NCBI RefSeq assembly: GCF_902713615.1
Contig: NC_052152.1
Location: forward strand, 51,621,810-51,685,809
Length of the DNA: 64,000 bases
DNA from: Scyliorhinus canicula
Lineage: Eukaryota
Direction: 5' to 3'
This document shows positions 22,070-52,275 of the stretch, one piece after another; the first letter of the stretch is position 1; each line of letters opens with the position of its first letter. The translations under genes were made by a program, and so were the position numbers. The notes beneath the pieces are model-generated. The model worked only from the letters and a program-made list of their open reading frames with translations. It did not search any database and was not told where the DNA came from.

Positions 22070-22102
22070 ATACACACACACACACACACGCACACACACA
22101 CA
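22070..22102 (+). repeat. (CA)n microsatellite
   Basis: Direct reading. Confidence 0.85.
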
Positions 22103-22209
22103 AGTTCATCTTGGGATAAATGGGATGCCGGTATAGTTCACTAGAATAATTTTCTGTGCATGTGATAAACAAAGCTTTAAGAATGCTGTCAAACCCCAGT
22201 GACCCTTAC

Positions 22210-26870: not shown

Positions 26871-29800
26871 ATATAGATTCCAATAATTTTATCTATTTAG
26901 TTTCCATCTAGGAGAAATTTATGCTAATGTTTTGTCATTTTTACATTGCTCAATAAGTTTCTGCACTTTTTAAAAACATATAGACGAAAGAACATTGTCA
27001 CCACACTGTGAAGGTGTTGTGCAGTTTCTAATGCTCCTAAGAATAGCATACCCTAAAGAAAGTTCACCATGTTGACCAACTGGTGATTAACGCTTTTGGT
27101 TACCACCTTAAATTGGACGTTAATTTGTGATAACACTGTGGTCACTGAAACAGTGATGTTGTTGAGAAAGCTGTGTGGTTCACCCCCTCCAGCTTTCCTG
27201 TTAAGACTTCAGCTAATGACAATTCTACTTTAAAAAAAGACTAGAACTCATTAGGACACCAGAATAATGCTGTTTATGTGAACATATTTTTTGAAGTGTT
27301 GTGTCATCCCTTTGATCAGTTTGTTGCATGTACCAGATAGATGCCAACTTGAAAACCACAGTGTGGACCTTGCATACCTGTAGATTCTCAGTTTGGTCAA
27401 AGGACGTAATCACCAGCCTACACTGAAAGATCACAAGTTTCAAATCGCTGCTACACTTTTGTCAGATAGCCTCTTAGATTTGCTATGCTCAATATCTACA
27501 GGCTTTTAAGTGCTTTGGCCTAGAAGTTAACCACAAATCTGATCAAATTTTATTCAAATTGAGCTTTTAAACCAGTATAAGAAAGAAAAACAACTGCAGT
27601 CCACAATGTAATCAACTTTATTTATTTTTCACTTCCTGTCCTTTCGACGATTTTTTGGCATGGACTTTGCATGTTGGCGATGAGCACTGTCTTTAACCAA
27701 AGTGCACAGTTCCACCAGAGAAACATCAGTGAATAGATTTACAATAGATAAAGAGTGCATTCATTGTCGGAGCAAGATATAACCTAATCAAAGTGTTGTT
27801 CTAATAAACGTAATAATGCATTGTAATGTCCCCTCACACCCCACCCCCATTGCCCACTGGCAGAAGACATTGCTGCAAAGTTACTGAAGAAAGCAACACA
27901 AAGTAAAACTCTGCATCAAGGTTTCATCTTCTATAGCTGTGGATGTGTGGAAGAAAGTGAAGGTAATTGATATCCAACTATTTTGTTGAAAAAGTAACTG
28001 GGTGATTGGTTGAGAAAAGAGTGGAGATTATGTTATTGGTATGTACTGAAATCAAACTACCCTTGGGACAGGGAACATGCTTTAGTCATGTAAAGGCTGG
28101 CAGCTGGTGTGGATGCTATTCTTTGCTTAGCTAAACAAAATAAATGCCTTTAAATTGAATATTTAATTTTCTGATTATTGAGATTATTTCACCCTTTTGG
28201 TTTCAATACAACGAGAACTCAGACCAAGAATCTGAAACCCAAGTTACACAGGTGCCTTTGAATTCATAAAAATTCAGAAGATTTTTATCAAAACTCAATC
28301 TCCCCAAACAGTTAATGATGAAAGTCTGGAAGTTGCTTTCCACAATAAGCTGTCCTGTGAAATCCGTTAAACAGCGTCTGGATTCACACCCAAATGTATT
28401 GAATGAGGTGAAGTTCCTGTATAGAAACATAGAATCCCTACAGCACAGAAGGAGGCCATTCTGCCCATCGGTTCAACACCAACCCTCTGAAAGAGCACCT
28501 GAGCTAGACCCACTCCCCATCTTATTCCTGGAGTTCCATAACTGCACCTGACCTTTTGGACATTAAGCGACAATTTAAAATGGCCAATCCACATAATCGG
28601 CACATCTTTGGACTGTGGGGAAAACCGCAGCATCTAAAGGAAACCCATGCAGACACGAGGAGAAAGTGTAAACTTCACACAGACAGTCACTGAAGGTCAG
28701 AATCAAAACTGGGTCCCTGGCACTGTGAGGCAGCAGTGCTAACCACTGTGCTATCGTGCCATTCTTGGTATTTGGTACCTGTATTGTATATATGGACTAA
28801 GCTATGCACAAAAGAATAGAGCTTGTCCAGTCTAGTCTAAGAACCCTTCCAATGGCACATTAAGTTTTAGTTACATTCAAAAACCTCCTTGGCACTGAAA
28901 ATTTACTGTTGCAAGTTTGGAGACTCCATTTTTTTATCTTTTAATTATTAGTGGAGATGTAAAAGACATTTAAATACTTTAACTTTTTTTCTAAATCTTT
29001 TACATCTATCTCCTAATCTAAGCTTTATTTTCCCACTTTATTTTATTTTCTGTACATCAATTTGAAAGTAAATTAAATGTTCTACCTTATTTTTCCAGAT
29101 GTGGGCTACTAATTTCAGTGTGATTTTTCAGTTTGAATCTCCTTTTGCTTGTGAAAGGTAGTTGCCATTCATTACTTTATTGTAATGATTGCACAAGAGA
29201 AGCAAAAAGATCAACACTCGTGATGGATTCCAACCCTTCCTATCCCTCCTCCATCCAGTTTGATGACGTGTCCCTACCCAAAATGTTAATCTGCTTTCAC
29301 TTCCATCACACATGGATAGGCCCGTTCCACACCACCAGTGTACCCTCTTACAAAAATATATAGGAGGTATAAATTTAGTGAAGTCAATGTTCACTTCAAA
29401 ATTTGTAAAGGAGAAAGAGATGTTTCATTGACATTCACTGTGGGAGTGTTACGACCAAACAGAAAGTCATAGGGAATTTGTTACATATGCAAATAAACAT
29501 AAGCCTTTTGCAAAGTAGCCACCTATCCTGTGTCAGACTCCCCAGTATGGAAGAGACTTTTGAACTCTGAACTAATCTAGGCAAGAGAGTTTTGGTCGCA
29601 GGTTAAACACATAAGCAAGTATATACTAATTGTCTCTCACCATATTCAGTAATGCTTTTAAGATTCACTTGTTGTGTAGTAAAACTTTTTAAAAATAGAA
29701 TGAATATCATCTCACCAAGTGTTAATTTGATCCACCAATAAAAGAAGACATTGGGCATGTTTTTCAACCTATTGGCATGGGAGATTGGCACCTTAAATTA

Positions 29801-29955: not shown

Positions 29956-30177
29956 TTTTTTTAAAATTAGAGTACCCAATTATTTTTCCAATTAAGGGGC
30001 AATTTAGCTTGGCCAATCCACCTACACTGCACATCTTTGGGTTGTGGGGGTGAAACCCATGCAGACACAGGGAGAATGTGCAAACTCCACACGGACAGTG
30101 ACCCAGGGCCGGGATTCGAACCTGGGTCCTCAGCGCCGTGAGGCGGGAGTGCTAACCACTGCGCCACCATGCTGCCC
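29956..30177 (-). mobile_element. A-tailed V-SINE
   Basis: V-domain and 14-bp TSD ctggaatggaattt. Confidence 0.85.
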
Positions 30178-31174
30178 CTGGAATGGAATTTGAACTTTGA
30201 CTTTCCATCCACTTGTATCTCAATCTGTGTTTACAGTTTACAACAACAACGTACATTAATATAATGTTTTTAACATCGCAAAAACAAGATTTTGACAACT
30301 AATTCAATATTCTAACAGATACTTCCTGATCCCAGACTCTGCAATGCTCAATACTTATTTATCAACCCAGGCACGGCCATCACCATAATTAAAGCAAAAT
30401 GCCGCAGATGTTGGAAATCTGAAATTAAACCAGAAAATTCTGGAAAAACATAGCAGTTTACATTTCCATTTGGGACGTATGCTATTTACTGCAGTTCTGT
30501 GCTTTTCATATCCAGATTTCTGGATTGGATTTGGATTTTGTTTATTGTCATGTGTGCGGAGGTACAGTGAAAAGTATTTTTTTTGCGAGCAGCTCAACAG
30601 ATCATCAAGTACATGAAAAGAAAAGGAAATAAAAGAAAATACATAATAGGGAATGTTAGTCTTAGAATTAAATTTTAAAAGTTTAGAATGAGTGTAAGAT
30701 AAGTAAAAAGAGGATCTGTTAGGGAGAGATCGCAGAGTCGCCAGGCACCGGCGCCATCTTGTGCATTTGAAGCTTTCGGCTTCCCTCGGTCTTTATCACC
30801 TGTGATTTTAATTTTACCCTGCCTGTTATACCTCTGAGAATTGAGAGTAGAGCTGCAGGATACTGGAGACAGAGTTGAATGTCCCAAGCACATAAGAAAT
30901 AGGAACAGAAGTTGTACATTCCAACATTCATTAAGTTTGTGATTCAACTTCAACTCTACCTTTCTGCACTATCCCCCTTATCATTTAATTCCCTTAGCAC
31001 ACAGAAAACCATCAATGTCTGCCCTGGATATCCACAGCCCCAGTGGGAGGGTAGATAATTACTAATCCTAAAATCCAGAACTGCTTGAATAAAGGTATGT
31101 CTCCTCATCTCAGTCCTAACTGGTTGAGCTCTTACTCCGAGGCTGTGATCCTGAATTCTAGATTCCCCAGCTAG

Positions 31175-32807
31175 AACATAGAACATAGAACGATACAGCG
31201 CAGTACAGGCCCTTCGGCCCACGATGTTGCACCGACATGGGAAGTCAAAAACTAAAGGCCATCTAACCTACACTATGCCATTATCATCCATATGCTTATC
31301 CAATAAACTTTTAAATGCCCTCAATGTTGGCGAGTTCACTACTGTTGCAGGTAGGGCATTCCACGGCCTCACCACTCTTTGCGTAAAAAACCTACCTCTG
31401 ACCTCTGTCCTATATCTATTACCCCTCAATTTAAGGCTATGTCCCCTCGTGCTAACCACCTCCATCCGCGGGAGAAGGCTCTCACTGTCCACCCTATCTA
31501 ACCCTCTGATCATTTTGTATCCCTTTATTAAGTCACCTCTTAACCTTCTTCTCTCTAACGAAAACAACCTCAAGTCCATCAGCCTTTCCTCATAAGATTT
31601 TCCCTCCATACCAGGCAACATCCTGGTAAATCTCCTCTGCACCCGTTCCAAAGCTTCCACGTCCTTCCTATAATGAGGCAACCAGAACTGTACGCAATAC
31701 TCCAAATGCGGCCGTACCAGAGTTTTGTACAGCTGCAACATGAGCTCATGGCTCCGGAACTCAATCCCTCTACCAATAAAGGCCAACACACCATAGGCCT
31801 TCGTAACAACCCTATCAACCTGGATGGCAACTTTCAGGGATCTATGTACTTGGACACCGAGATCCCTCTGCTCATCCACACTACCAAGAATTTTACCATT
31901 AGCCAAATATTCCGCATTCCTGTTATTCTTTCCAAAGTGAATCACCTCACACTTCTCTACATTAAACTCCATTTGCCACCTCTCAGCCCAGCTCTGCAGC
32001 TTATCTATGTCCCTCTGCAACCTGCAACATCCTTCCACACTGCCTACAACTCCACCGACTTTAGTGTCATCTGCAAATTTACTCACCCAACCTTCTGTGC
32101 CCTCCTCTAGGTCATTTATAAAAATGACAAACAGCAATGGCCCCAGAACAGATCCTTGTGGTACGCCACTCGTAACTGAACTCCATTCTGAACATTTGCC
32201 ATCAACCACCACCCTCTGTCTTCTTTCAACTAGCCAATTTCTGATCCACATCTCTAAATCACCCTCAATCCCCAGCCTCCATATTTTCTGCAATAGCCGA
32301 CCATGGGGAACCTTATCAAATGCTTTACTGAAATCCATATACACCACATCAACTGCTTTACCCTCGTCTACCTGTTCAGTCACCTTCTCAAAGAACTCGA
32401 TAAGGTTTGTGAGGCATGACCTACCCTTCACAAAACCATGCTGACTATCCCTAATCATATTATTCCTATCTAGATGATTATAAATCGTATCTCTTATAAT
32501 CCTCTCCCAGACTTAACCCACAACAGACGTGAGGCTCACCGGCCTATAGTTACCTGGGTTATCTCTACTCCCCTTCTTGAACAAAGGGACCACATTTGCT
32601 ATCCTCCAATCCTCTGGCACTATTCCTGTAGCCAATGATGACATAAAAATCAAAACCAAAGGCTCAGCAATATCTTCCCTGGCTTCCCAGAGAATCCTAG
32701 GATAAATCCCATCAGGCCCGGGGACTTATCTATTTTCACCTTGTCCAGAATAGCCAACACTTCTTCCCTATGCTCCTCAATGCCATCTATTCTAATAGCC
32801 TGGGTCT
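31175..32807 (-). mobile_element. Young 5'-truncated CR1-clade LINE with an open 396-aa RT ORF (31268-32458), nested in an older CR1
   Basis: QHGFVKGRSCLTNL, GVPQGSVLGPLLF and KFADDTK motifs. (TTCTATG)n 3' tail. cagctag duplicated at 31168-31174 and 32808-32814. Confidence 0.92.
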
Positions 32808-34250: not shown

Positions 34251-34326
34251 TGTGGTAATTGGTGGAATTGCCCACAATCGACCCCCGAATGACAAGTCAC
34301 GTGACGCACAGACTGCTACCACCACA
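34251..34326 (+). promoter_or_regulatory. Putative proximal promoter of the V-C1 gene
   Basis: Palindromic E-box GTCACGTGAC (34296-34305) flanked by RUNX-type cores TGTGGT (34251) and ACCACA (34321), 75-150 bp upstream of the ATG. Motif match only. Confidence 0.4.
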
Positions 34327-34400
34327 ATGATCTTCGTGATCTTAAATTTGCACAGAATAACCAACAGCTCTGAACTACCGGTGACCAGGTTTTCAGTAAT

Positions 34401-34440
34401 ATGGGTGCAGTTGTTCTCAAATTCTGCCTCTTTGTCCTAG
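34401..34440 (+). CDS. IgSF V(J)-C1-TM gene, exon 1 (leader)
   Basis: ATG GGT GCA...CTA G|gtaagg. MGAVVLKFCLFVL is a hydrophobic signal peptide followed by a phase-1 intron. Confidence 0.85.
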
Positions 34441-34536
34441 GTAAGGATTCACTTGAACTCCGGTTATCAGTAATTCCAGTTGTGCTCAGATTATTTGGGT
34501 TTTCCGTTCCTATTTGTTATATTGTTTTTATTCCAG

Positions 34537-34878
34537 GGCCTGTTGTGGGTCTGAAAGTGATTCAGTCTCCTCCAGTTCTGTCCCTCCTGACAGGACAGAC
34601 AGCTCGAATTAACTGCAGCCTGACACCCGGAGAGGAGAGGGTGGGTTTGGTGAGATATTATTGGTGGAGGACAAGAGACAATCCTGACAGCAGAGGCAAT
34701 GGATACAAGCATTACCTCCAGAAAAGCTCTCGCCTGTCCCTATCTGGGACTGAACATTCACTCGTCATTCGGGAGGTGATTGTGAACGATTCGGACATTT
34801 ACCACTGCCTGGTTCTTAGAGAGGAAATTCGGCCCTATAAAACCATCATGGGGGAAGGAACAAAGCTGAACGTTCAAG
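34537..34878 (+). CDS. IgSF V(J)-C1-TM gene, exon 2 (V-set domain with germline-joined J-like G strand)
   Basis: ttttattccag|GG ... CAAG|gtaatt, 342 nt. Reads LKVIQSP..ARINC..YYWWR..DSDIYHC..MGEGTKLNVQ, giving the B-strand Cys, C-strand Trp, DxxxYxC and GxGTKL motifs. Confidence 0.95.
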
Positions 34879-34889
34879 GTAATTAGAAA

Positions 34890-35115
34890 ATAACACAAAG
34901 TACTCAGCAGGTCTGACAGTCTCTGTGGAGGGAGAAACAGAGTTAAAGTCGACTTTTGGTCAGAACTGGAAGAAGGTAGAGATTTAATCGTTTCACAGGT
35001 TAACAAGGTCATCTATCTGACATGTTAACTCCGTATCTCGCTCCACAGATGCTGCCAGACTTTCTGAGTTTTTCCTGCCTTTTCTGTTTTAATTTCAGAT
35101 TTCCAACATCCGCCC
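34890..35115. repeat. Fold-back (inverted-repeat) dispersed element at the start of the V-C1 intron
   Basis: actcagcaggtctgacagtctctgtggag..aacagagttaa is mirrored by ttaactccgtatctcgctccacagatgctgccagactttctgagt. Half-copies lie at about 23660 and 30380. Confidence 0.55.
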
Positions 35116-36056
35116 TATTTTTTCTTTTGACTCTGGGTCTGGACAGAGGGGGATAGGGTGAAATCCGGAGGAAGGGTCCAGAACTCCAGGATTTTAAGAT
35201 GAAAGAAGAGGCCACAGCGGGTCTTGTTGTTTTACCTCCCATGTGGTTAGGATCTGGAGTGTACTGCCAGAGAACGTGCTGAAGAAAGATTCAATGGTGA
35301 TTTTCCAAAGAGAATTGGACAATTTTTTGAAAAGAAACCTTTTCAGGGCCACTGAAAAAGGGCTGGAGTGGGATTGGCGGAATTGTTCTTTCAGACAGCA
35401 GGGGCAGGATGGGCCAAATGGCCTCCCCCTGTGCTGTGACCATTCTATGATTCTCTGATGAGATGAAGGGACATTGAAATAGCTCAATGTGTGGGAAATA
35501 AACAGAAATAACTCCAGACACTAATCTGACCTGATGTGACATCCTCTGTACACTGGGCCGGGAGTGAGTGTGCCCGGGTTTAGCTTTAATGTCCCAATAA
35601 CAATTAAACAACAGGGACTTTCATATCCTTCTCAAAACCTCGTTTGAAGAAGAACAGACACAAGTCTAAGCTGGTGTAATACTGACAGCAATCCTAACAG
35701 CGGAATATGATTATATTAAAAAAGCGAATTGCAAAGAGTGAAACTGGTCTTTGGAAAATAATTATATTTACTTGTTTACCAGCTCTAACAAACACAGACC
35801 CAATTTGTGCCGCAATGACACTTATTGTAAGGTCACTGGATATTATTTATATTATTCTGGATCTTATTTCATGCGCGTTTCATTTTCTCTTTTTAAAATT
35901 TGAATATTGATTTTTTTTTTAAAACACTAATCAAATTGATTCTACAGTTTCCCATTTAGTTCAGATTTGTACAAGTTTAAATCTTTGCTACAGTTGTCCG
36001 CTATTTATTTGCTACAATGAATATTGATAGAAGGTGTGTTTTTATTGTTTATTTAG

Positions 36057-36356
36057 CTAAACCTGAAGTCTCTCTCTCTGCGGATCCCGACAGTGAAGTT
36101 ATTGGGATTCGGGCTCTGACTTGTTTGGCAGCGGGATTTTTCCCCAGTGACCTGAACATTTCCTGGATTGTAGAGGGAAATGTCTCCTATCAAACTGAAC
36201 CAGGCTCGCTGACAGTGAACAGGGACAACACCTACAACCTGAGCTCCCGGCTGCAGATTACAGACACTCACTGGGACCAGGGAACCGCCGTCATTTGTGA
36301 GGTTCAGCACATCACACACAGTGAGCAAGTGAGGATAAGTTTCAGACAAAGCAGAG
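36057..36356 (+). CDS. IgSF V(J)-C1-TM gene, exon 3 (C1-set domain)
   Basis: tgtttatttag|CT ... AGAG|gtacgt, 300 nt, phase 1/1. Reads KPEVSL..LTCLAAGFFPSDLNISW..NRDNTYNLSSRL..VICEVQH, the C1 hallmarks shared by Ig, TCR and MHC. Confidence 0.95.
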
Positions 36357-38574
36357 GTACGTTATTCACAGAAATGAAGAAGAGATAGCAACTAAGATAA
36401 GGAAGAATAAGTGTGCTTATGACAGATGTCAGGTTGAAATCACAGCTGTGAACCAAGAGGAATGTAGAAGGCTTAGAGAGGAGGCGAACAGGCACATTAG
36501 AGAAGCGAAGAGGGATTATGTGGAAAGGCTGGCAGCCAACATAAGGGGGAATCCCTAAATCTTCCATCGGCATATAAATAGTTAATAGGTGGTAAAAGCA
36601 GGAGGGCCGTTTAGGAATCAAGAAGAATTTACACATGGCTAAGGTATGAAATAAATACTTTGCATTTGCCAAGGAGGTGGATGCTATCTAGGTCATGATG
36701 ACAGAGGACAAAACTGCCACCAAAAGGGTTCAAAACTGATAAAGAGGAAGTGTTGAACAGGCTTTGGGCACAGGTATAATTGGTATTGTTCCATCACTCT
36801 ATATTACTACTTTAGTGCAGATAAATTATGTTAATGCCCAACAGGTTTATTTGGAATCACTAACTTTTGGAGCTTTGCTCCTTCATCAGGTGAGCTCCGA
36901 AAGCTTATGATTCCAAATAAACCCGTTGGACTTTAACCTGGTGTTGTCAGACGTCTTACTGTGCTCACCCCAATCCAATGCCGGCATCTCCAGATTAATT
37001 ATAGGCTAGAAGCAGAACATTTTGAGCAATCACTGAGGAAATGAACAATGTTTTATGGAAATTTTCTGTTGCTCTCCTCTTATCATAACAACACGGCTAA
37101 ACATTATGGCCTGGTTTATTCACTCAGCCAGTAAAGAATAACCAATTCCGTTCCAGCTGCACCATTTACCATGAAATCGAATTGCTTCCGACATTACTAC
37201 ATTGTCGCGCTTTACATACTTAGACTGTTATAGGGCTTCTAGCACAATCAGTTCCAGTCATACGTTATGATTTAAAAAATCCTCCCAGATAATAACCAAC
37301 ATTTAACTCGGTCACCACAACCCACCAAATTACTATCGGTTAGTTAATTGAAGAGTACAATTTAATTTTTAACTAATTAAAATGTGACCACTTAAGTTTC
37401 AAAATGTGCAATTAAATTATGCTGCAGCCCTTCATCTCAGAAAATGGGACAAGCGACAATTAAAAGCAATTTATTTTACATATCGTTATGAAAAACGTTT
37501 TTATCAATAAAATACAAATGGCATAACTGATAATATAGGTATTAAATGCGTTATTGTATATTTATGGTTAACAAGAGAAGGACAAAAGTGTAGAAGTAGA
37601 AGCGGTTGACCTCCTTCCAGCAATGTTCCCTTTCCAATGTGAGCGAGAATGGTCCCACGTTAATCAAGCTCTCATTGAAATATACAGGCCGCTCACAACT
37701 TCGTCAATTGTCAGGACAAATTCCCAGCATGATTTAAACATTTTCTAATATAAGGTGTCCCGTGAATTGGAACGTAGTGTTCAGGAGTCTGTTACATGTG
37801 CCACACAAAGAAAAGTGAAAGTGAACATTATTTTTGTATTTGCTAACCGGTGATATTGACAGGCGTGCATTGGGAGGAGAGGGCAGAAACATGCTCCCAA
37901 GGGACAGCAAGTAGGTAACTGAAGCTAAGCAGAGAGATGGTCAGCAGCCTGGACAATAAAAACACACTGGGCGGATGGAAAGTTGGATCGATAGCCAAAC
38001 CGTAAAAAAAAAAGATGGTTCTGGAGTAACATATTGAGAAACATTTTCCACATAGTGCTGTCAGTCAGTCGATTTGAACCAGCTGGACATTCAAGGGTAA
38101 CCATACAGAAGATTTAAACTTTTACCTGTGCGACCCAGAAGACAACTGCTTCTCCATTTAAAGTCACATTCAGTCTTGTGTTCTATTTGTACCTACAAAC
38201 TCAACCAACATTTTGACAGATGCTGTTGTCTATGTTCAAGTCAAGTTAAAATTCAAACGCTTATAAATATTTCACATGGTGTGAAGCACAGGATTTTGGC
38301 TGTACTAAACAGCCAGATTAATGTCATTTGTGGTATTATTTCATAAATCACCCCCCAAAGTCACAGTTTTTTAATCTTCCTGTACCCGTTTCTTCTCAGT
38401 AAATCATTTGGTCAGATTGACAGTTTAGCGATTCAGACGCTGAAGGCCCACAAAGACCATACTGTCTCTGTTGGAGTGTGTCACATTGAAACTTTTAAAT
38501 CTATTTTGTGTGTCGGTGCACAGAGGGGGATTAAAACAGAGACACACTGAAAGCCAGTTAGGTGTCTAACCATA

Positions 38575-38752
38575 AATGAAATGAAATGAAAATCGCTTAT
38601 TGTCTCGAGTAGGCTTCAATGAAGTTACTGTGAAAAGCCCCTAGTCGCCACATTCCGGCGCCTATCCGGGGAGGCTGGTACGGGAATCAAACCGTGCTGC
38701 TAGCCTGCTTTTAAAGCCAGCGATTTAGCCAAGTGAGCTAAACCAGCCCCTA
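38575..38752 (-). mobile_element. Short tRNA-headed SINE with (TTTCA)n tail (related copies at about 9040-9170, 43300-43450 and 48225-48340)
   Basis: The shared block gcttattgtcacaagtaggctt..gaagttactgtgaaaagcccctagtcgccacattcc recurs across these copies. Confidence 0.6.
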
Positions 38753-39217
38753 AAGTTGCATGAGTTTTAATTAAGACTGAAAGTTTACAAATACTGGAGG
38801 GTAGTGAGAATGTACCTTGTTCAAATTAGTGAGAAAACTGTTGTGGGGAAAATGTGATGCGTTATTTTACATTAACATGGGGTTAAATTGATCAGATTAA
38901 AATAGGCAAATCAAAGCGCCGCTGTATCCCTTCCATCTGGCACAGTAAAGCAGCTTTTCTTGTCTTAACAAGTTGATGCTCGATCAACCTCACCTAAGAT
39001 TAAAGATGGGCCCGCAAAATAAGTATCAAGTTCGGACCACTAAAGATATTCCGAGTTATGCTAGTTGATCTATTGTAGCATTGAGTAGTCGTCAGTAAAA
39101 GATGCTCATTTAGCTAAGAATCTGAAACTTTGGAAATATCTATGACAACCCTCTATGTTTGATAAAAAAGGATCAGAAGAATTTCTTATGGGTATGTTGG
39201 CAAGTTGCTACATCCAG

Positions 39218-39345
39218 GTGATCTAACCCTATGTTCTCCGGTTATAGGCGACTTGTCCATCCCAGTAATCATGCGCTGCCTCATCATCTTTGTGGGAATG
39301 AGTTTGTTACTAACGGCAATGATCTGCGTTCAGATTTACAAGTAA
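39218..39345 (+). CDS. IgSF V(J)-C1-TM gene, exon 4 (connecting peptide with Cys, transmembrane with Arg, short tail, stop)
   Basis: catccag|GT, phase 1, reading GDLTLCSPVIGDLSIPVIMRCLIIFVGMSLLLTAMICVQIYK*. An alternative in-frame acceptor lies at 39247/39248. Exons of 40+342+300+128 = 810 nt give 269 aa. Confidence 0.8.
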
Positions 39346-39888
39346 ATTGTAAGTAGTTAAATTTAGCATATTTTTGTGTGACTCTAATGTATCATTTTAT
39401 TATTCAACAGTCTCTCGTGGCACTGGCAGCTCTGACATCAGGAGAACTGTATGAATAACAATCTGAAGCGATTTATTACTAGTTCCAGTTTTGATTATTT
39501 GTAATGATCATTTCATACTTAAGAAAAAAAAGCATTTTAGTCTTCGCTTTGCAAACCATTAAATAATCGTTATTCCAATGAGTTTAGGTGTAATATGTAT
39601 ACTGCAAATAGGTTAAATAGTTATTATCCATAAACATTAATAGCTGAAAACTTGTAGGAAATCTAAGTATTGTAGAATCAATTAAAAAGCAAATCTTAAT
39701 AGATGACCCAATACCAACAGCTAAAACAATCTTTTCAGGGGGAAAAAATCTGTACTTCAATTAATTCAACTTATCTTATGATGATCAAGCCATGTTTTTT
39801 TTTTACAGTTGGGATCGTACAAGCTCATAGCTTGCTTGTTTATTGGTTTATTTTACTTAATATTAATGGTTTTCTTACATCATCCTTT

Positions 39889-40113
39889 TTAAAAAATAAA
39901 TTTAGAGTACCCAATTTATTTTTTCCAATTAAGGGGCAATTTAGTGTGTTCAATCCACCTACTCTGCACATCTTTGTGTTGTGGGGGCGAAACCCACGCA
40001 AACACAGGGAGAATGTGCAAACTCCACACGGGCAGTGACCCAGAGAGGGGATTGAACCTAGGACCTCAGTGCTGTGAGGCCGCAGTGCTAACCCACTGCG
40101 CCACTGTGCTGCC
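39889..40113 (-). mobile_element. A-tailed V-SINE just downstream of the V-C1 gene
   Basis: V-domain and 15-bp TSD cttacatcatccttt. Confidence 0.85.
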
Positions 40114-42627
40114 CTTACATCATCCTTTACCCGAACTCAAGTGTGACGGTGCTGGGGCGTGTTTGCTAGATTTGGAATGGCTCCTCCACACAAACAACTG
40201 AGAGATTTTGGAATCTCCCTGGATTATATTTAAAGATATTATCATAGCTATAAACTAGAGTAATTGGTAGATTCAATTCTCGGAGCTAAAGGCAATGAAC
40301 CACAGTGACACATTTCATTTTTAATTAGAATATACATCAAGCCCCCATTTCCTGAGTTCCACACAAGGAAGATTGCATCAAGTCAGAACCATATTGATTT
40401 ATACTATTTTGGTGATTTTTCTGTGATCCATAGGGTGAATTGCCCATGTGTCAAGCCTGCCTAAACTAATTTCACAAAGAGCCCTTGCACCAGTACCAGA
40501 GACATTATATTAATTCTGGCTGGGCCAGCATTTATTGTCCATCCCCGAGGACATTTAAAAGTAAACCACATTGCTTTGGTCTGGAGTCACATGTAGAATG
40601 GAGTCCCGTGTAGTCCGGTGCAAGTAATCAAGGCAGATTGAGTCATTAAATGGTTTCAATAAGGAGATAGATATATTTCTGATTCAAAAAAACGGCTTAA
40701 AGGGGTATGGGGAACAGGTGGGGAGGTGGATTTGAGACCAGGAAGAGATATGCACTGATCTGATTGAATGGCAGAGCAGGCGGGAAGGGCTGCATTGCCT
40801 ACTTCCCCTCCTAATTCCCATGTTCCTATTTCCTTCCCTAAAGGGCATTTGTGAACCAGATGTTTTTTTTAAAACGACAATCGTTTCATGGTCATCATTA
40901 GATCTTTTTTCTTTTAATTCCAGTTTTTTTTAGTTGAATTCAAATTCCACCATGTGCCCTGATGGAATTTAAACCCAGATCATAGAATTTGCAGTGCAGG
41001 AGGCCATTCGGCCCATCCTCAAGTCTGCACCAGCCCTTGGAAAGAGCACCCTACCTAACCCCACACCTCCACCCTAACCCGGAACTCCACCTCAGGTTTT
41101 TGGACACTAAGGGCAATTTGGCATAGCCAATCCACCTAACCTGCACATCTTTGGTCTGTGGGAGGAAACCAGAGCACCCAGAGGAAACCCACGCAGACAC
41201 GGGGAGAATGTCTGTGACCCAAGCTGGGAATCGAACCTGGGACCCTAGAGCTGTGAAGCAACTGTGGTAACTACTGTGCTAGTGCCCAGAGCATTACCCT
41301 GGGTCTCTGAATTATTAGCCCAGTGACCACTACGCTACTGCCTCCCCTGTCTCAGCAGGCATCAAACTTACGTGTCTCAGAGACAGTTACTATAATTCAT
41401 TGTATGATTCATCAATTCATTCCCAATGTTGAAGCACGGTGAGTCTCTCATCTCAAATGTGTGCCATCTCAAAAAACACTTTTTAACCACCTTTGTTAAC
41501 ATCACCTGATTTCACCCAATCTCAGTTCATCTATTGCGGAAACCTTAACCCCATGCCTTCTTTACCTCTAGACTTTACTCATCACTGGTTTCCCATCTTG
41601 TACCCTCCTGAAACCTGAGGTCATCCAAAACTCTGCCGCCTGTGTCTTAACTTGCAGAGTGTCCAGCTCCCCTATCACTGCTCTGTTTGATTTAAAAATC
41701 CTCATCCTGGTTTTCAAATCCCTCCATGGTCATGCTCCTTTGTATCTGTCATCTCCCCAGCAAAATACCCCAGAGAAATATGCATTCCTCTGAATCTAGC
41801 CTCATGTGCATTCCCAATCATCAGTTTTCTTGGCCTCAAGCTCTGGAATTCTGCCTGTACATCGTTAAACCTCACTTTCCTCCTTTAAGACACTTCTTAA
41901 AACCTACCTCTTTGAGAGGAAGCTTTTGGTCATCAAACTCAATACATCCTTTTGTGGCTTGGCATTTATTTTATAACGCTTCTGTGAAGTGCCTTGGGAT
42001 GTTTCCCTATGTGAAAGTGCTATTTCATATAAGTTGTTGTTGTTAAATATACAATTGGTTAAAAGAATTGTTCTGCATCTTGAATGATATTGCAAGTGTA
42101 AATTGAATCAGTTACTGAATAAAATTCAGGTCACAAAATCTTTTCCAAAGTATTTTGCAGAATACTCAAATAATTTACTTTATTGATGTATTTGTTGTCT
42201 TACATTCAGTCTTGAAAAGAACAAGTGCCAAGTTAAGAAAGCAATATTCTGACCAAACTGAAATCATATACTTTGATAAAAGTAAATCCTCATTCATTGG
42301 AAATTGTTTTCCCACCTTTGATAAAAATGAAGTAGCCTTTTGCTTTAAAACAGAAATCATGGAACAAATATTTGGCTTCAGAGTGGGGATGATGCAGATT
42401 TGTATTTTGTTCCTGTAACAGAGAAACTCACACCAAAAATATAAATATTCCATCAATTTAAAGATTTTGTAACTTGCATCATAATTACATGAAAACATCC
42501 ATATTATGTTTGGCATGTTTCTGACATCCATTAATTCAAGTTTCTCAAATGTACAGATGAATTGAGCTATGACTATGATTTACTAAAATGTTTGACAATT
42601 AAATTGCAGGACTGTTTCCTTTGAAAC

Positions 42628-42772
42628 TCAGACACCAAACAGATTTCGAAGATCAGCCAGTGTAAGCTTGGTAAAGGATCCACCAGTTCCTGATAGCACC
42701 TTCTTTGCAAGTTCCTTTTTCTTCTCCTGAAGCTCAAAGATTTTGTCCTCAATAGTGCCCTCACACACAAAC
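42628..42772 (-). CDS. TTF2: TTF2 last coding exon
   Basis: ccctccag|G TTT GTG..., reading [47 protein letters not shown]. Matches the TTF2/lodestar C-terminus. Confidence 0.93.
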
Positions 42773-44122
42773 CTGGAGGGAAACATAATTTTCTTTAGTA
42801 AAGCAATATTTTTTTTAAAATACCACCTTTTCTGAAATATCCTTGTATAGTGAAACTGAATTTGCTACAAAATCATACTGCTTTCGGTACTTTACAGCAA
42901 TGTATCACTCACAATTTGTTGAGATGGAGCAAGTCAACAAGTTCTAACATTAGCTGCAATGATTGGTCAGATCCACCTGACATTAACATTGATACAAGAA
43001 CAATGACCCAGAATACAACGCCATACTTTCAGGGGCAGCAGATTACCAGTCCGGACACAGGACAGTCTATTCTTTCAACAAGGCATGAGAAGCTGATGTT
43101 GACAGTTTTCTGTATATGAACTCAAATCAACTTTTAAAAAATATACAAAGAACTCGGGTACTAATGTAATTTCTGACTGTGCACAAACTGATTAAAGAGA
43201 GGTCATTAGTATTCTAATTTTCAAAGGGAATGATTTCCAAAGAAACAGGAGCAAGTTATTCGGCTCTTTGAGCATATTACATCATGCAATGAAATAATAA
43301 TAATCTTTTATTGTCACAAGTAGGCTTATATTAACACTGTGACAAGTACCCTGTTCGGGTAATGAGCCGGTACGGGAATTGAACCCGTGCTGCTGGCCTT
43401 GTTCTGCATTACAAAACAGCTGTCTAGCCCACTGAACTAAACCAACTCTTTTGAAATCAGAGCTGGTCAGTGTCCTACCCTTTTAGTTGCCTGTGCCTGC
43501 AAAAAATTGACTGATCTCAGATGTAAAATTAAATAACTGTGCTAACATTTACTGTTTTGAGAGAGAGAGTGCCACAATTCTACCACCCTTAGTGTAATGA
43601 TGTGTTTTCCAAATTGCTTTTGAAAGCTCTGGGGCTGATTTTAAAGTTCCGTCCCTTGTCCCAGACACCCCAACCAGCAGAATACATTTCTGCTGCATCA
43701 CAGCACCAGGGACCCGGGTTCAATTCCGGCCTTGGGTGACTGTGTGAAATTTGCACTTTCTCCCCGTGTCTGAGTGGGTTGCCTCCGGTTTTCTCCCAGT
43801 CCATAGATGTGCAGGTTAGGTGGATTGTCCATGCTAAATTGCCCCTTAAGTGTCCAAAGGCTAGGTGGGGTTACGGGGATAGGATGGAGGTGTGGGCTTA
43901 AGTAAGGTGCTCTTTCAAGGGTCTGTATAGACTCGTTGGCCGAATGGCCTCCTTCTGCACTGTAAATTCTATGAAATCACCCCATAATTTCATTTTCCAG
44001 GAATACAAGTCTAGCGTACGCAATCACTTCTCATAATTTTACACTTTGATCCCTAGTAACATTCTGGTACTGCATTCCTTCCAAGGCCTTTCCAAGATGT
44101 GCTGCCCTGAACTGAACACCAA

Positions 44123-44775
44123 GGGCGCGATTCTCCGCTGCCCACGCTGGTTGGGAGAATAGCGGGTGGGCCTCCCGACATTTTTCACGCCCTCCCGCTA
44201 TTCTCCCCGTCCCCGAACCACGTCACGAATCGTCGCTTGCCGTTTTTTACGGCGAGCGGTGATTCTCCGCGGCCGATGGGCCGAACCTTTACGCCCATTT
44301 TTTCACGGCAGCAAACACACCTGCTCGCTGCCGTCGTAAAAACGGCCGCTGGATGCCCGTTTGGGGCATCCAGAGGCCCGTTTGGGGTGGGAGCACCACC
44401 GTTGTACTCGGGAGGGGACAGGCCCGTGATTGGTGCCCACCGATTGTCGGGCCTGCGTCCAAAAGGGACGCACTATTTCCCCTCCACCGCCCGACAAGAT
44501 CAAGCCGCCACATCTTGTCGGGCGGCGGTGGAGAAATGCGGAACCGCGCATGCTCGGGTTCCGTCAATGGCGTGATGACGTCACACGCATATGCGCGGGT
44601 TGGAGCCGGTCGTTAAGGCCGCAATGCCGTGATTCCCGGGGTCCCGCTCCTAGCCCCGATTGGGGGGGGGGGAGAGAGAATCGGGTCCCAGGACCGGGCG
44701 TGGAGGCTGCCGTGAAACACGGCCGGTTGCACGGCAGCCTTTACGACTCTCCGCATTTGCGGAGAATCTCGACCC
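44123..44775. mobile_element. GC-rich MITE, same subfamily as 53277-54018 in the opposite orientation
   Basis: TIRs GGGCGCGATTCTCC / GGAGAATCTCGACCC. Internal sequence is reverse-complement similar to the 53 kb copy. TSD unclear. Confidence 0.7.
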
Positions 44776-46589
44776 AGATTCTTGATGTGGTCTAACCAGG
44801 GCTTTGCACTTGTGGCAAAACCTACCACCCCTATATTCTAGCCCACCAGATACAACGGCTAACATTCCTTATCTTTATTTTTGATTGTTTTGTAGTTTAT
44901 CATAATATTTTCACTATCCGAATACCTGGACCCCTTAATCTCTTGGGACCTCCAATATTGCTAGCTTTTCACTATTTAAAAATAATACTCATCTATCCAT
45001 TTCTGGTCTAAAATAGATGACCATGCAACTTGTCGGATTTGAAATCCATCTGCCACAATCTTGCACTCTCAATGTTGCTTTGTAATTCTATGTTTTTGTC
45101 TACACTACTTGCAATACTGGCAAACTTGGATAACGCAATAGAAAATTATATATCCAAGTTATTAACAAATATAGTGAATAGTTGAGGCCCCAGAACAGAT
45201 ACATGTAGCAGTAGTTATTTCCTCTAGTTTGAGAACATACCCATTTTACACTGCTTAACCAATCTCCAAGCCAAGGCAATAATTTGCCTTCAATTTCACA
45301 TGTTTCTCTTCTGTGGAACTTAATAGAATATATTCTAGCAGTCCATTTCAGCTACATGTTTAGAAATTCCCCTGGTTACTGCGATAGTTGCATACCTTTC
45401 TTAAATATTGGAGTTACATTTGAAGTTTTCTAATCTAAATTCCAGAACCTTTCAAAGATTATGGCTGAAGCAGCAGCAATTTTCTCGAATACTACTTCTT
45501 AAAAATATGGGGTGGAAATCATCAGGTCCTGGGGATATGTGCAGCACGGTGGCACAGTGGTTATTCCCTCTCGGTGCCAGGGACCTGGGTTAAATTCCAG
45601 CCTTGGGTCACTGTCTATGTGGAGTTTGCACATTCTCCCAGTGTCCGCGTGGGTTTCCTCCGGGTGCTCCAGTTTCCTCCCACAGTTCAAAGATGTGCAA
45701 GTTAGGTGGATTCGCAATGCCAAATTGCCCCTTGTGTCCAAAAAAATGTGTAGGTTAGATTAAGGGGTTAATGGGATAGGAAAGGTAAGTAAGTTTAGGT
45801 GCAGACTCGATGGGTCTCCTTCTGCACTGTAGTGATTTGTCAGTCTTTAGCTGCACCATTCTTTCCGATAGTATTTTCTTGCTTTTGGCAACTATGTTCC
45901 ATTCCCTGATTCATTCAGAGTTTCTCTTGAATATCAGGCACATTAATTGCTTCGTTGATTGCCATTTCCTTACTTTAATTTGCAATATCAGCACATCAGT
46001 TTTTAACTACTGAAGCCAGTCCTTCAGGAAAAATGCATCAACTTAAAAGTATCCAACATTTAAAAGCAAAACAAAGCAAGGAAAGACTGTGTTGGATAAC
46101 TTTCAGAAATTTACCAATTACCTCCGAACATTCCACAGGACATCGAAAGCTTGATGTACACACTGAGTGACTTTTACAACAGACAAGTCAAGACACAGCT
46201 AACAAAGCCATCTGACCACATGAGTATGCTGTCTCCAAGCTGTATAACCAGTTAAAATCCCTACAGATTTGGAGTCATTGTGACAGAATGTGCCTGCATA
46301 TTCTTGAAATGCTAATCTCCGAGAACTTTATCATTAGAGCGTAACCCACGGAATATCATAATCAGGATCTTTCCTGTCAAAAACCATCTTCAAATTATAA
46401 TTGACTACCCGAGAACGTTTAAAGTGAAATTAACCTGATATAACCAGGACCTTCCCTTTTGAAACCAGCTTCATATGTTACTGGCCTATCATGAAGTTGT
46501 GCTGACATGTAAGACAACAGAGATTTGGGGAAGGATTGTGCGACAATCTGTCAAGGGTGTGATTCTTGGTTTAATGCCTCCTCAGTTAC

Positions 46590-46664
46590 CTGTGCACAGT
46601 TACATTCTTCCGTTGCCCCACACGATAAATTCGATCAGATGCCTGCTCCTCCAGTGCTGGGTTC
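46590..46664 (-). CDS. TTF2: TTF2 exon (helicase motif VI)
   Basis: 75 nt with canonical splice sites, reading (W)NPALEEQASDRIYRVGQRKNVTVH(R). Confidence 0.93.
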
Positions 46665-48600
46665 CTGACAAAACAAATTAAGTATTTATAAAAATTTGAC
46701 CTCCAGGAGGGGGCCTCACGGTAGCATGGTGGTTAGCATGGTGGTTAGCATCAATGCTTCACAGCTCCAGGGTCCCAGGTTCGATTCCCGGCTGGGTCAC
46801 TGTCTGTGTGGAGTCTGCACGTCCTCCCCGTGTGTGCGTGGGTTTCCTCCGGGTGCTCCGGTTTCCTCCCACAGTCCAAAGATGTGCGGGTTAGGTGGAT
46901 TGGCCATGCTAAATTGCCCGTAGTGTAAGGTTAATGGGGGGATTGTTGGGTTACGGGTATACGGGTTACGTGGGTTTAAGTAGGGTGATCATTGCTCGGC
47001 ACAACATCGAGGGCCGAAGGGCCTGTTCTGTGCTGTACTGTTCTATAAGGAGTACAGAAGGACATTTGGTTAACAAATTCAATAATCATAATATTCTGTT
47101 GACTCCATTAATTTCAATACAATATCAATTTTGGATTTATCAAGATTTTTTAATAAAGTGGCAGATCTGCGAAAACTTCCTGCCAAAGACATCATGCAGG
47201 TGCTATCGCCGGACAAATAAAACAAAAAGACGATTGAATAAAAAAAATGTACAAAACACATTAGAAAACTCAATTAGTGTTTTCATAAATGATCCACAAA
47301 ATTTTTAATACATTAAAAATTGAAATTGGTGTTGCAATTATGCCAAGATGATTATCTGAATTTGGTTATTAAAGCTTTCCTGGTATGAGGTACTAGACAC
47401 AGGTTACTGACTAAGAACTCCCCAATCTCAGCTGAGCTATGGGAGGAGGAGCAAGAGGGGAAGGGTGGGGGGGAGATAGTGTTGCTACCAAGTGAGGAGA
47501 AAACATTTAAATAAACCCAAGAGAGTCAATGAAGAATTATTCTGTGATGAGAGCAGCATTGACTGAGACTTGGAACAAGTGGAATACGAATAAAGAAAAG
47601 GTGAAAATTAATTTCACAAATGAAGTTAAGAAAAAACACAAACAAAATGTTTTTTATGAACGAGAAAAAAGTTCACTCCTTAAATGTGGACAGCATGGTA
47701 GCACAGTGGTTAGCACAGTTGTTTCACGGCTCCAGGGTCCCAGGTTCGATTCCCAGCTTGGGTCACTGTCTGTGCGGAGTCTACATGTTCTCCCCGCCTC
47801 CCACAGTCCAAAGACATGCAGGTTAGGTGGATTGGCAATAATAAATTGCCCTTAGTGTCCAAAAAGGTTATGTTGAGTTACTGGGATAAGGTGGAGGCGT
47901 GGCCTTAAGTAAGGTGCTCTTTCCAAGTGCCGGTGCAGACTCGATGGACCGAATGGCCTCCTTCTGCACTGTAAATTTTATGATTCTAAATGGTAAGGGA
48001 AAGCATTGATGGATGATGCGAATGGGATTGAAACAAGGCACTCAAATGTCTGATCATTTAGATCTAATGATTATTTAGATTTAGTGCCATTATTGCCAGC
48101 GATACATTTGATGTGTTCTGATGTTAATGAAAAGTGATAAATTGAAAACTAAGAAAATCGGTTGGCATTTTAACAGTCACAGTGTAAAACAATCCTTATA
48201 CACAAAGCAGCAAGGAATAATAATAATAATCTTTATTATTGTCACAAGCAGGCTTACAGCACTGCAATGAAGTTACTGTGAAAATCCCCTAGTCGCCACA
48301 TTCCGATGCCTGTTCGGGTATACCGAGGGAGAATTCAGAATGTCCAAATTACCTAACAGCGCGTCTTTCTGGACTTGCGGGAGGAAACCGGAGCATCCGG
48401 AGGAAACCCACGCAGACACGGGAAGAACGTTAGGGCCACAGACAGTGACCCAAGCCAGGAATCAAACCTGGGACCCTAGCACTGTGAAGCAACATTGCTA
48501 ACCACTGTGCTACCGTGCCGCCCATGGATACATGTTCTTTCATTATCACGTTTTAATATAGTCTGTAATTATCTTCAGTACAGCTGATGCGTAATCTTAC

Positions 48601-48683
48601 CAGTGCATATCTAACAGGAAGAGGTGGTTGCCTCCAATGAGGTTCAAACCCACACCCCCAGCACACAGCGACACCAACATGGC
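48601..48683 (-). CDS. TTF2: TTF2 exon (helicase motif V)
   Basis: 83 nt with canonical splice sites, reading [27 protein letters not shown](W). Confidence 0.93.
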
Positions 48684-49129
48684 CTGTGGTAAGAGAGAGA
48701 TAAAGTTCAGTAAGGAAACATTCCCAAGATAATCAAGTCTTAAAAATGGCACATTGTTGACAACACGAGTTTGAATGAAGAATAATCATATTTAAACAGT
48801 GATCGAACCAAGTATATTTGACTATATGAGTAGAATTCCCAATGCCATCAGACTGAAATTTTATTATACTTTTCATAATAATATGCCACATTGTTGAACT
48901 TCCTGATAAATAAACCACTGCATGCAATCCACTGTGTAAAATATAAAGATTTTATTTTGTCCAGCTTTCTTTTCAGCTCAGCCAAGAATTAGAGGGATGT
49001 TAACAAACAAGTTATCACCTATTAGTATCTTCAGGGAAGAAAACTGAAAATAAAATAAACCTCCCCGAGTATTCTGGATCTGTGATTCTGTCATCACAAG
49101 TGAATTTAAAACAGCAGCCAACTATGTAC

Positions 49130-49283
49130 CTGAGGGCCTTTAGGGTTAGTGTTAAATTCCTCCACCAAGTCCATACGACGCTTAGGGGTTACAGAGCCAT
49201 CCAGAGTAACGTAGCTCAGGCTCATTTGATCCAAGTGGCCTGCCACCACATTCAGCATGCTGGTCCACTGAGAAATGATTACA
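49130..49283 (-). CDS. TTF2: TTF2 exon (helicase motif IV)
   Basis: 154 nt, reading (S)[51 protein letters not shown]. Confidence 0.93.
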
Positions 49284-52275
49284 CTGAGAGAAAAGACCAA
49301 TAAATGAACAAAATGATTAATAGTCTTATCATTTAGTTTGGAAGCTTACAAATTGGGAATGTAAGAAAAAAGTGCAAGGCAATAAATAGTTACATACACA
49401 GAGGTCTAATTCAGATACTGATCCCACTATAATCATAGAAACCCTACAGTGTAGAAGGAGGCCATATGGCCCATCGAGTCTGCATCGACCCTCCGAAAGA
49501 ACATTCTACCTAGGACAACTCCCCAGCCCACCCCACCCTATCCCAGTAACCTAACCTTCATGTCCCTGGACACTCAGGGGCAATTCTATAATGGTCAATC
49601 CGCCTAACCTGCACATCTTTGGACTGTGGGAGGAATCCGTGCATCCGGAGGAAACCCACACAGACACAGGGAGAATGTGCAAGCTCCACACAGACATTCA
49701 CTCAAGGCCTGGATTGAACCAGGGTCTCTGGCAGCTGTGAGGCAGCAATGCTGACCACTGTGCCACTGGGTTTCCCACAATAATCAAATCGGCAGACATA
49801 GAAAACACTACTGAGTTAATTTGAATGAGGAAAAAGCATTTTATTTGACAACATTCAAAGTACTTTACAGCCAGTTCGTTAACTTTGAATTATAGTTACT
49901 CGGAATGTAAAAAAACATAATAGTAATTGCTATGATGTACAATGTACCTTCAACTCACCATTTACAAAGTTCAAGTCAGAATTTGATAAAATACTCCCCA
50001 CTTCCCTGTATGAACGTGGCAACAACTGCAAGGTGCTTGAGATCATCCAAAGTAAAGTAGTTAATTTTATTATCGCTCCAGCTGCTGTATGTAATATCTA
50101 ACCCTTTCACTACCAACACAATACAAAAAATATAGGATGTGCTGCACTAACTCAAAAGGTTACTTCAACAATACTTCCTGCTACTGAGAAGGACAAGAGC
50201 GAAACTTGTGGACACACCATCACCCCCAGATTCTCTTCCAACAGATACCCTAACCATGCTAACTTAGATTCACAGTAAACTCCAGTCATTCATGAAGCCC
50301 TCAATCATGATTTATTTTGCCCATGTGAACATAGTTGCAGACGTAATCACGGTTCACAGCCCAAAAAACGCCACTTATTCATGATGAACTCTCAACTTTC
50401 CCACGTTCATGAAGAAAGCGCACGCTGCACATGTACAAGTTCACCTTCATCTTCACTCTTGACAACATCCTGGAATTTGCTCTTCAACACTTTGAGGGAA
50501 CTGCACTGCCACAATGATTGCACATAAGCTGTTCCAGGAGAATGCCCACTACCATCTTCTCATGGAAAATAGTTACAAGCAATAAAGTGGCACTGCTCGC
50601 ACCACAGAAATCCCAAAAACGTTAAAACGGTACGGCTGCTGCTAGGACCAGTTTTCCTGCCTGAGGGCAGCTAATATTAATGAGTAACAATTATTGCAGT
50701 TTAAAAAGAAATCTGATTTGTGAGTGATTTATTTTCCTGCTTTGAACCTTGCTCCAGACTGTAGGAATACAAGACCACTGCTTCCCCCCACAGATAGGGC
50801 TTCTGAGGAACAGATATGCCATTCCCCAAGAACATATCTATGTATGTCATTATGAATAGGAACAAGAGAAAATGGAAGGACAGAGAGTCAAACAGCACCC
50901 TATAGCCTTCGACACCCCACAAAGAACAAACATGTAACACAAATCCTATTAATGACCTTAATGAGGGGATGTGTACAGTATTGAAGGAGGAAAGTCACCA
51001 AAGAGGCAATTGGAAAGTGGCATAAAGGAACCTGCATGCCCGGTCACCTACAAGACAGCTTGCTTGTGTCTATGAAGGTCACATCCAACCTCACTCTCAG
51101 CCAGTCATTTCCGGAAGACACGAGGTAATCTGGAGCATTGGCCATGCATATCATAGATCATAGAATTTACAGTGCAGAAGGAGGCCATTTGGCCCATCGA
51201 GTCTGCACCGGCTCCTGGAAAGAGCACCCTACCCAAGGTTAACACCTCCACCCTATCCCCATAACCCAGTAACCCCACCCAACACTAAGGGACACTAAGG
51301 GCAATTTATCATGGCCAATCCACCTAACCTGCACATCTTTGGACTGTGGGAGGAAACCGGAGAAACGGGGAGGATGTGCAGACTCCACACAGACAGCGAC
51401 CCAAGCCGGAATCGAACCTGGGATCCTGGAGCTGTGAAGCGATTGTGCTATCCACAATGCTACCGTGCTGCCCTGGCATGTCAGGTGACTGATGTAATTT
51501 TCTGCAGAACTTGGATCTCCACGTATTCTCCATCATTATTATGCTCCTCAGTACAGCCATCCTCATAGTCTACAAGGTGAATTCCCTTTCTGTTCTCCAT
51601 CATCAACCCCTATTGCTGCATCAGGTCGACAGGAAACTAGAGTATGAGCTAAGAACAGGTTAGCATAATACCCATAGGTTAAAAGAGGCAGAATGTGTAG
51701 AAGGTTGCGCCTCAAGACTGTTGATACCCAAGCAAGAAAGAAAAAAAGAGCAGCCAATATGATATCATGCCTGTCTTTATCAGGCTATTAAATTTCTTGA
51801 AATACAGTGCTGCATTTCTGGCCGTGGGGAGTGAAAAAGAGAATTGGCCTCATTCCATAATAGAAGACAAACAGTCTCTCATTGATACTCAGCAGTTTTT
51901 CTATCCTTTACTGAAGAGGATGGCCTCAAGATCCATCCCAATAATATTATGTGTCTTTTTTTGTTCCTTTCTGGCTGTCTTGCCATATTCTCTAGTAAAG
52001 ACAGTACTGACGTGGGAAAGCAGTCAGTGACTTTCACATGATTCACCAGGAGTTGTTTAAATGGGACGATCCTGCGTTTCACAGCAGTTGAACTCTCCTG
52101 GGCACTGGCAAGAAAATTAATGCAAATTAGTGTGCGCTCTCATGTCCAGTAATATTTCCAGTCTTGGTACTTTGTAGAAAACTACAGAGCTGCACAGTCT
52201 TTATTTACCACAGAGATAGCACTTTCCCATCATCCAAATGATTTCTTGAATCATGAATCCCAATAAGAAACGTAC

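Follow-up and report, generated by a model that had tools for sequence, protein, structure and literature searches.

The exon at positions 39248-39349 of the stretch of Scyliorhinus canicula DNA that was analysed here (64 kb, hereafter called the window) probably codes for the part that anchors a receptor chain in the membrane, the chain being the activating one of a SIRP-like pair, of which the twin is inhibitory. The anchor itself is real: it is spliced, expressed and conserved, it is of the activating type, and it is ordinary in kind. Paired activating and inhibitory receptors recur in vertebrate innate immunity, where exploitation of the inhibitory member by pathogens has often influenced their evolution, and the present case is a clean and old example from cartilaginous fish, with an ectodomain that resembles one antigen-receptor chain and that has no need for rearrangement. 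The activating anchor has been kept since the split between sharks and rays, and the ectodomains are held alike within each species. The window gene and its ITIM-bearing twin form a defined pair for asking which ITAM adaptors and which ligand sharks use, and they bear on the question whether signalling of V-C1 chains by way of a membrane Arg is older than the rearranging receptors themselves.

The anchor exon is the last coding exon of a gene on the forward strand with four coding exons (leader, VJ-type V, C1 and membrane anchor), all of which have canonical splice sites of phase 1 in the gene model that was derived from the sequence. The leader exon with the 5' UTR runs from 34300 or earlier to 34440; its coding part (34401-34440) begins with the ATG at 34401 and ends at a phase-1 donor after 34440. 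The V domain is encoded by a single exon of the VJ type (34537-34878; Pfam V-set, E = 3e-09), with the equivalents of Cys23, Trp41 and Cys104 and a built-in J-like segment, G-E-G-T-K-L-N-V, of which the GxGTxLxV motif is kept in the orthologues. The presence of the V and J-like parts in one and the same exon is not the arrangement of a gene that is completed by somatic V-J rearrangement. The nearest solved sequences to this V domain are Ig light-chain V and TCR V-delta domains. The C1-set constant-domain exon (36057-36356; Pfam C1-set, E = 2e-15) is of phase 1 on both sides and precedes the transmembrane and tail exon (39248-39349), which in its RNA-supported form reads G-DLSIPVIMRCLIIFVGMSLLLTAMICVQIYK and carries the codon for the intramembrane Arg (cgc, 39274-39276), invariant in the alignment discussed below, and the stop codon at 39343-39345. 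When positions 39220-39345 (+) are translated, DLTLCSPVIG is obtained, followed by DLSIPVIMRCLIIFVGMSLLLTAMICVQIYK and the stop, which is the peptide that an earlier first-pass annotation of this region had described. With the acceptor at 39248, the product has 259 amino acids and the C-terminus QIYK. The receptor gene is single-copy within the 64-kb window, and no protein matching its product was returned from the public protein sets that were searched.

Evidence for expression comes from Logan contigs of four runs that were laid on positions 34300-39700; the library type of these runs is not on record, and it is the spliced joints that mark them as RNA, which is otherwise a guess. The joint between leader and V exon (34440|34537, GT..AG) is found in runs X1, X2 and X3, and record 9 of the X2 contigs follows 34300-34438 with zero mismatches before it joins 34535/7. 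The C1 exon is covered by RNA contigs at 36055-36354, and from its end at 36356 it is joined to 39248, with GT..AG borders and 2891 bases skipped, in runs X2 and X3, which belong to two studies. This joint is listed as 36354 to 39246 (cut +2), and the X2 contig that carries it has 441 bases, a depth of 25 and a short side of 104 letters. The first-pass annotation had let the exon start at 39218 and had pointed to a stalk Cys in the sequence TLCSP. Because the C1 exon joins 39248, the 30 bases at 39218-39247 that would add DLTLCSPVIG in frame, including this Cys, are intronic in the transcripts seen. No joint to 39218 is listed in the X2 and X3 contigs, and since contigs drop rare variants, 39218 may at most serve as a minor alternative acceptor. 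Its pyrimidine tract is also the poorer one (12/22, versus 15/22 for the acceptor at 39248), and the junction at 39248, R|GDLSIPV, reproduces the annotated ray junction R|DDHLIPF. The transcripts seen thus use the same anchor exon as described first, with its acceptor moved to 39248 and the Cys segment left out.

At its 3' side, the anchor exon ends with a gtaagt donor four bases past the stop codon, at 39349/50. In three runs the contig match stops at 39349 and is followed by 29 unlike letters, and since these contigs continue past the donor into unlike sequence, a further 3' UTR exon must lie outside 34300-39700. At the junction of exons 3 and 4 (36350-36356 plus 39248-39255), the spliced sequence spells S-R-G-D-L, which places an RGD tripeptide directly at the membrane. 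The rays have N-R-D-D-H at this site, so the tripeptide is not conserved, and it is probably fortuitous.

The hydrophobic run of the anchor is about 27 residues long, with the Arg 5-7 residues into it and either K or QIYK after it. A very short cytoplasmic tail had been predicted correctly, the length of about 3 residues given earlier being replaced here by QIYK, or K, and a pattern scan of the QIYK tail found no ITIM, ITSM or ITAM, in agreement with the first reading that ITIM and ITAM are lacking. Orthologues across sharks and rays were found by a V-region protein search and then by a profile search. The Arg-type anchor is documented in four species only, which make up the anchor alignment (n = 4): the window gene, Scyliorhinus torazame P0017, Hemitrygon akajei P0013 and Mobula hypostoma P0014. 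All four agree at I4, P5, I7, R9, I12, I13, V15, G16, S18, L19, L20, L21 and I25, and the Arg and the VG-x-SLLL core are unchanged across the two catsharks and the two rays. Due to their spacing (i, i+4, i+7, i+11), R9, I13, G16 and L20 share one face of the helix. The tails of the rays are longer, about 17 residues, and likewise have no signalling motif. The anchor therefore has both features of an adaptor-dependent activating receptor, a conserved basic residue in the transmembrane helix and a short tail free of motifs. With the ray anchor (region 222-270 of P0013) as seed, a word search retrieved nothing but the query itself, and a profile of shark and ray anchors run against 1.84e9 representative proteins returned only the orthologue P0017 and the repetitive P0018, which is regarded as noise. 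Two cysteines of the S. canicula helix are less constant than its core. The one that directly follows the Arg (39277-39279) is replaced by a Tyr in S. torazame and does not occur in rays, and the one near the cytoplasmic end (MICVQ, 39325-39327), which could be a palmitoylation site, is absent in rays as well.

The first-pass annotation had seen in this anchor a TCR-alpha/delta-like signature, and had proposed an invariant or surrogate TCR chain with a TCR-alpha-homologous anchor that forms a disulfide-linked dimer through the stalk Cys and docks to zeta-zeta. The gene does resemble a TCR-alpha/delta chain in its V(J)-C1 architecture, in having an Arg in the outer portion of the helix and in the tail of a few residues, and the L-S, L, G, LL and T of the shark anchor can be placed in register with human TCR-alpha, the sequence of which had been quoted exactly. 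In this register there are 7/24 identities with a BLOSUM62 score of 23, a score reached by about 1% of composition-preserving shuffles (P 0.01) and an identity reached by about 3% (P 0.03). The null is generous, because shuffling destroys the layout of polar ends and hydrophobic core, and the register does not convincingly exceed chance. Conservation in orthologues had been suggested as a check, and R, G and SLLL are indeed invariant (n = 4), but of the seven positions held in common with TCR-alpha the rays keep only G and LL in the homologous register, and the register in which ray anchors score best against TCR-alpha is a different one. The Lys five positions past the Arg is missing in all four species, leaving a single Arg that is shifted by one; this absence and this shift had been recognized before. 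When the 31-residue anchor was compared with all PDB chains by phmmer, no TCR appeared at E<=10 with full-length TCR-alpha and TCR-delta present in the library, the only matches at this threshold being Frizzled-6 and Insig, by chance, and no TCR was found by profile among the 1.84e9 proteins either. The sole candidate for a membrane-proximal interchain Cys is spliced out in the transcripts seen and absent in rays, which removes the basis for the disulfide-linked dimer. The expressed shark gene is thus unlike a TCR-alpha/delta chain in having no rearrangement, no Lys, no interchain Cys and no HMM-detectable similarity, as well as in having an ITIM twin, and no evidence for a surrogate TCR chain was obtained, the best colinear V-C1 match in the PDB being SIRP-alpha D1-D2. 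The likeness of the anchor to TCR-alpha is weak, no more than would be expected for single-pass helices with an outer Arg, and we consider the TCR-like explanation very improbable.

The inhibitory counterpart is P0004 of S. canicula, a protein of 367 amino acids with a V-C1 ectodomain that is 94% identical to that of the window protein and that shows 1 difference in 101 residues in the C1 domain. Its transmembrane segment is uncharged and is followed by four ITIM/ITSM-like tyrosine motifs (LHYAPV, TEYAVL, VQYSAV and TIYASL), three or four of which recur in three other shark genera; the remaining ones keep two. Most of the orthologue models are of this ITIM type and 334-374 amino acids long; they come from S. 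canicula (P0004), Mustelus, Stegostoma, Hemiscyllium (P0003), Heptranchias and Heterodontus. The anchor is without charge in almost every one of them, and each has a tail of about 100 residues, with the conserved motifs LHYA[SP]V, TEYA[VI]L, V-x-Y-[ST]-x-V and T-x-Y-x-S-L. The exons for the anchor and tail of P0004 left no trace in the 64-kb window, even at E 50, and because of their absence P0004 is to be regarded as a separate gene and not as an alternative 3' end. Alternative splicing of the window gene to an inhibitory tail is ruled out by the same search.

RNA contigs under the same species label carry both the window gene and the twin. In these contigs, the V exon of the twin departs from that of the window gene by 15 substitutions and a deletion of 6 bases, which cluster in the FG (CDR3-like) loop at 34812-34844. 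The twin transcripts differ also at a few C'-C'' positions, and their C1 exon is about 99% identical; it is the ligand-facing FG loop that differs between the twins while the rest stays alike. In a maximum-likelihood tree of ectodomains, the window protein groups with P0004 (100/99) and the two Hemiscyllium genes group with each other (99/99), which is by species and not by tail type. Since the Arg exon and the locus predate the shark-ray split, this grouping points to homogenisation of ectodomains within species, a hallmark of paired receptors.

The assignment to a SIRP-like family is based on the ectodomain. Human SIRP-alpha D1-D2 gives the best colinear V-C1 match in the PDB, with 53.4 bits in one stretch, in which G-x-G-T-x-L-x-V-x-A-K-P and the VICEV-H-T strand are common to both. 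Per stretch, the comparison covers one Ig light chain, the lambda part of a composite chain, which reaches 44.8 bits; the whole-sequence scores are 86 bits for SIRP-alpha, 82.5 for UrIg2 (summed) and about 77 for the best Ig light chain. As in mammalian SIRP-beta1 and SIRP-alpha, a V domain with a J-like G-x-G-T-x-L-x-V is followed by A-K-P and a C1 domain, and as in the mammalian pair, an inhibitory twin with several tyrosine motifs occurs beside an activating twin with one basic transmembrane residue and a tail of a few residues. The shark chain differs from mammalian SIRP in having one C1 domain instead of two, its single C1 exon being spliced straight to the anchor in place of a three-domain V-C1-C1 layout, and in having Arg instead of Lys and almost no stalk. 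The location is different too: the shark gene lies between TRIM45 and TTF2, the human counterparts of which are at 1p13.1, whereas the human SIRP genes are on chromosome 20. Neither does the SIRP analogy fix the adaptor, because mammalian SIRP-beta pairs with DAP12 through a Lys. The automatic names given to the orthologues by NCBI are inconsistent (SIRP-alpha-like, SIRP-beta-1-like, kappa light chain-like, TCR beta-like and Ig heavy chain-like), and neighbours in the ESM Atlas, which include generic V/C1 clusters and tapasin-related, SIRP-beta-like, nectin and butyrophilin folds, do not discriminate.

Other elasmobranch relatives of interest are UrIg and UrIg2, which are also non-rearranging and have a single-exon VJ domain followed by C1 (PMC12227049); UrIg2 is among the top solved-structure matches of the window protein. 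UrIg, with three C1 domains, is secreted; UrIg2 is anchored in an IgM-like way and has nine of these domains. Disulfide-linked homodimers are formed by both (PMC12227049). The receptor gene described here is different from these in its one C1 domain, its Arg anchor and its inhibitory twin. It is not mentioned in the UrIg papers, and no paper on SIRP-like or TRIM45-TTF2-linked VJ-C1 receptors of sharks was found in the literature covered, outside of which lay Ohta et al. 2019 and Fu et al. 2019 (PRARP).

The genomic surroundings of the gene recur in other species. Upstream in the window are TRIM45-like exons on the reverse strand (17309-22682), with Pfam matches to RING (22206-22682) and to B-box and coiled coil (17309-18130). 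Downstream, in tail-to-tail orientation to the receptor gene, the 3' exons of a TTF2-like SNF2 helicase occupy 42628-49300 on the reverse strand, as judged from ORF peptides and a weak Pfam Helicase_C match. In S. torazame the same order is found, with a RING/B-box/Filamin gene of 579 amino acids (-), the receptor gene (+) and a GRF/SNF2 helicase (-), and the span of the gene is nearly equal. A gene with GRF zinc ribbon, SNF2 and Helicase_C domains adjoins the orthologues in four other species (S. torazame, Hemitrygon, Cetorhinus and Hemiscyllium), and the genes of the window, S. torazame and Hemitrygon are positional orthologues, being TTF2-adjacent. In humans, TRIM45 lies next to TTF2 at 1p13.1, and the flanking genes are CD101, PTGFRN and VTCN1. 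The TTF2-adjacent models of Cetorhinus (P0001) and Hemiscyllium (P0002) have short, odd C-termini (…VTGSLQ and …SPELALVLFLGKD, respectively) and no Arg anchor. Faulty models would explain this, as would a change of the exon in the two sharks, and because the models end differently, the Arg exon may have been lost in some sharks.

Regarding function, the window gene encodes a type I protein of 259 amino acids in which a signal peptide precedes a non-rearranging VJ-type V domain and a single C1 domain; there is hardly any stalk, the single-pass helix has one Arg in its outer third, and the tail has four residues. Both twins would bind the same or similar ligands, and the ITIM twin would recruit SH2 phosphatases. 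Since the Arg chain would be unable to signal alone, it is proposed that a dimeric ITAM adaptor offers its two Asp residues to this Arg within the membrane, and that this pairing would be needed for surface expression and signalling. The model for such a mechanism is provided by the SIRP, KIR, LILR and NKp receptors and their three-helix membrane assembly, and by analogy with these the Arg probably couples to an Asp-bearing ITAM adaptor. The type and depth of the Arg suggest the FcR-gamma/CD3-zeta class as the most likely candidate, with DAP12 less likely: the Asp of DAP12 is located mid-membrane, and an outer-leaflet Arg fits FcR-gamma or zeta better. Receptors coupled to FcR-gamma or zeta, such as NKp46, Fc-alpha-RI, LILRA, OSCAR and GPVI, have the same lone Arg a few residues into the helix and a minimal tail, and the depth of the Arg in NKp46-type receptors equals that of the adaptor Asp in FcR-gamma and zeta. 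Their ectodomains, however, are of the C2/I-set and their gene families are unrelated, so that the likeness is one of mechanism only. What had been suggested in general terms at first, an invariant chain of the activating type that needs a partner through its intramembrane Arg, is supported by the present results, as the Arg is kept from catsharks to rays, the tail has four residues and no motif, and the ITIM twin is 94% identical.

The Arg could instead serve another partner or act in retention, and the gene product could accordingly be a decoy or non-signalling twin that binds ligand without an ITAM adaptor and uses its Arg for ER retention, regulated delivery or contact with some other membrane protein, in the way that the Lys of tapasin docks TAP. 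The analysis itself shows no adaptor, the structural neighbours of the V-C1 model of the twin include tapasin-related proteins, and mammalian paired families have non-signalling members, of which SIRP-gamma is one. This explanation is nevertheless unlikely, since the Arg, along with I13, G16 and L20 on the same face, has stayed unchanged from the shark-ray split onward, a pattern that fits a specific helix-helix contact, and since a single basic residue, a minimal tail and an ITIM twin are the standard design of adaptor-dependent receptors. A truncated copy of the inhibitory gene, decaying and functionless, with a terminal exon that is hydrophobic by accident, might explain why the product matched no protein in the searches and why the Cetorhinus and Hemiscyllium models are without the exon. 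Such a copy would hardly have kept an intact frame, canonical splice sites and spliced transcripts in runs of two studies, nor an exon and junction that are retained in rays at the same TTF2-adjacent locus, which makes this possibility a very slight one.

A more far-reaching variant is that the gene is a surviving non-rearranging chain of the antigen-receptor lineage, located in a chromosome-1-type MHC paralogous region (TRIM45-TTF2), UrIg (MHC) and UrIg2 (Ig/TCR complex) being the two other relics of this kind. The 1p13 region is one that we take to be tied to MHC paralogy, as are the regions of UrIg and UrIg2. The outer-leaflet Arg would then preserve an ancestral coupling of V-C1 chains to adaptors of the zeta/FcR-gamma type that existed before the TCR-CD3 complex, and the likeness to TCR-alpha would be a real remnant. 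We regard this as a speculative idea of low probability, and retain the activating member of a SIRP-like pair as the preferred interpretation.

Repeats were also noted in the window. Remains of retroelements include an open reverse-transcriptase segment of 396 amino acids at 31268-32458 (-), 2 kb upstream of the receptor gene, further RT-like pieces at 25068-26876 (+), and a GC-rich block at 4800-8900 with endonuclease/RT-like ORFs. In intron 3, contig depth rises to 1e4-5e5 over the stretches 36834-37014 and 38463-38824 in each of the four runs, and loose ends and odd joints are numerous there; both stretches probably belong to a SINE-like repeat that is transcribed and present in very high abundance. 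A dispersed family of short repeats gives the same ORF-like translation on both strands (e.g. ...GSNPGPGSLSVWSLHILPVSAWV... and ...LQGPRFDSRLGHCLCGVCT...). Its copies, recognized by this recurring translation, are at 29967-30212(-), 39944-40201, 43589-43804(-), 45499-45763, 46696-46923, 47529-47855, 48340-48501 and 49604-49780(-), and are scattered over the interval between the receptor gene and TTF2 and over the TTF2 introns.
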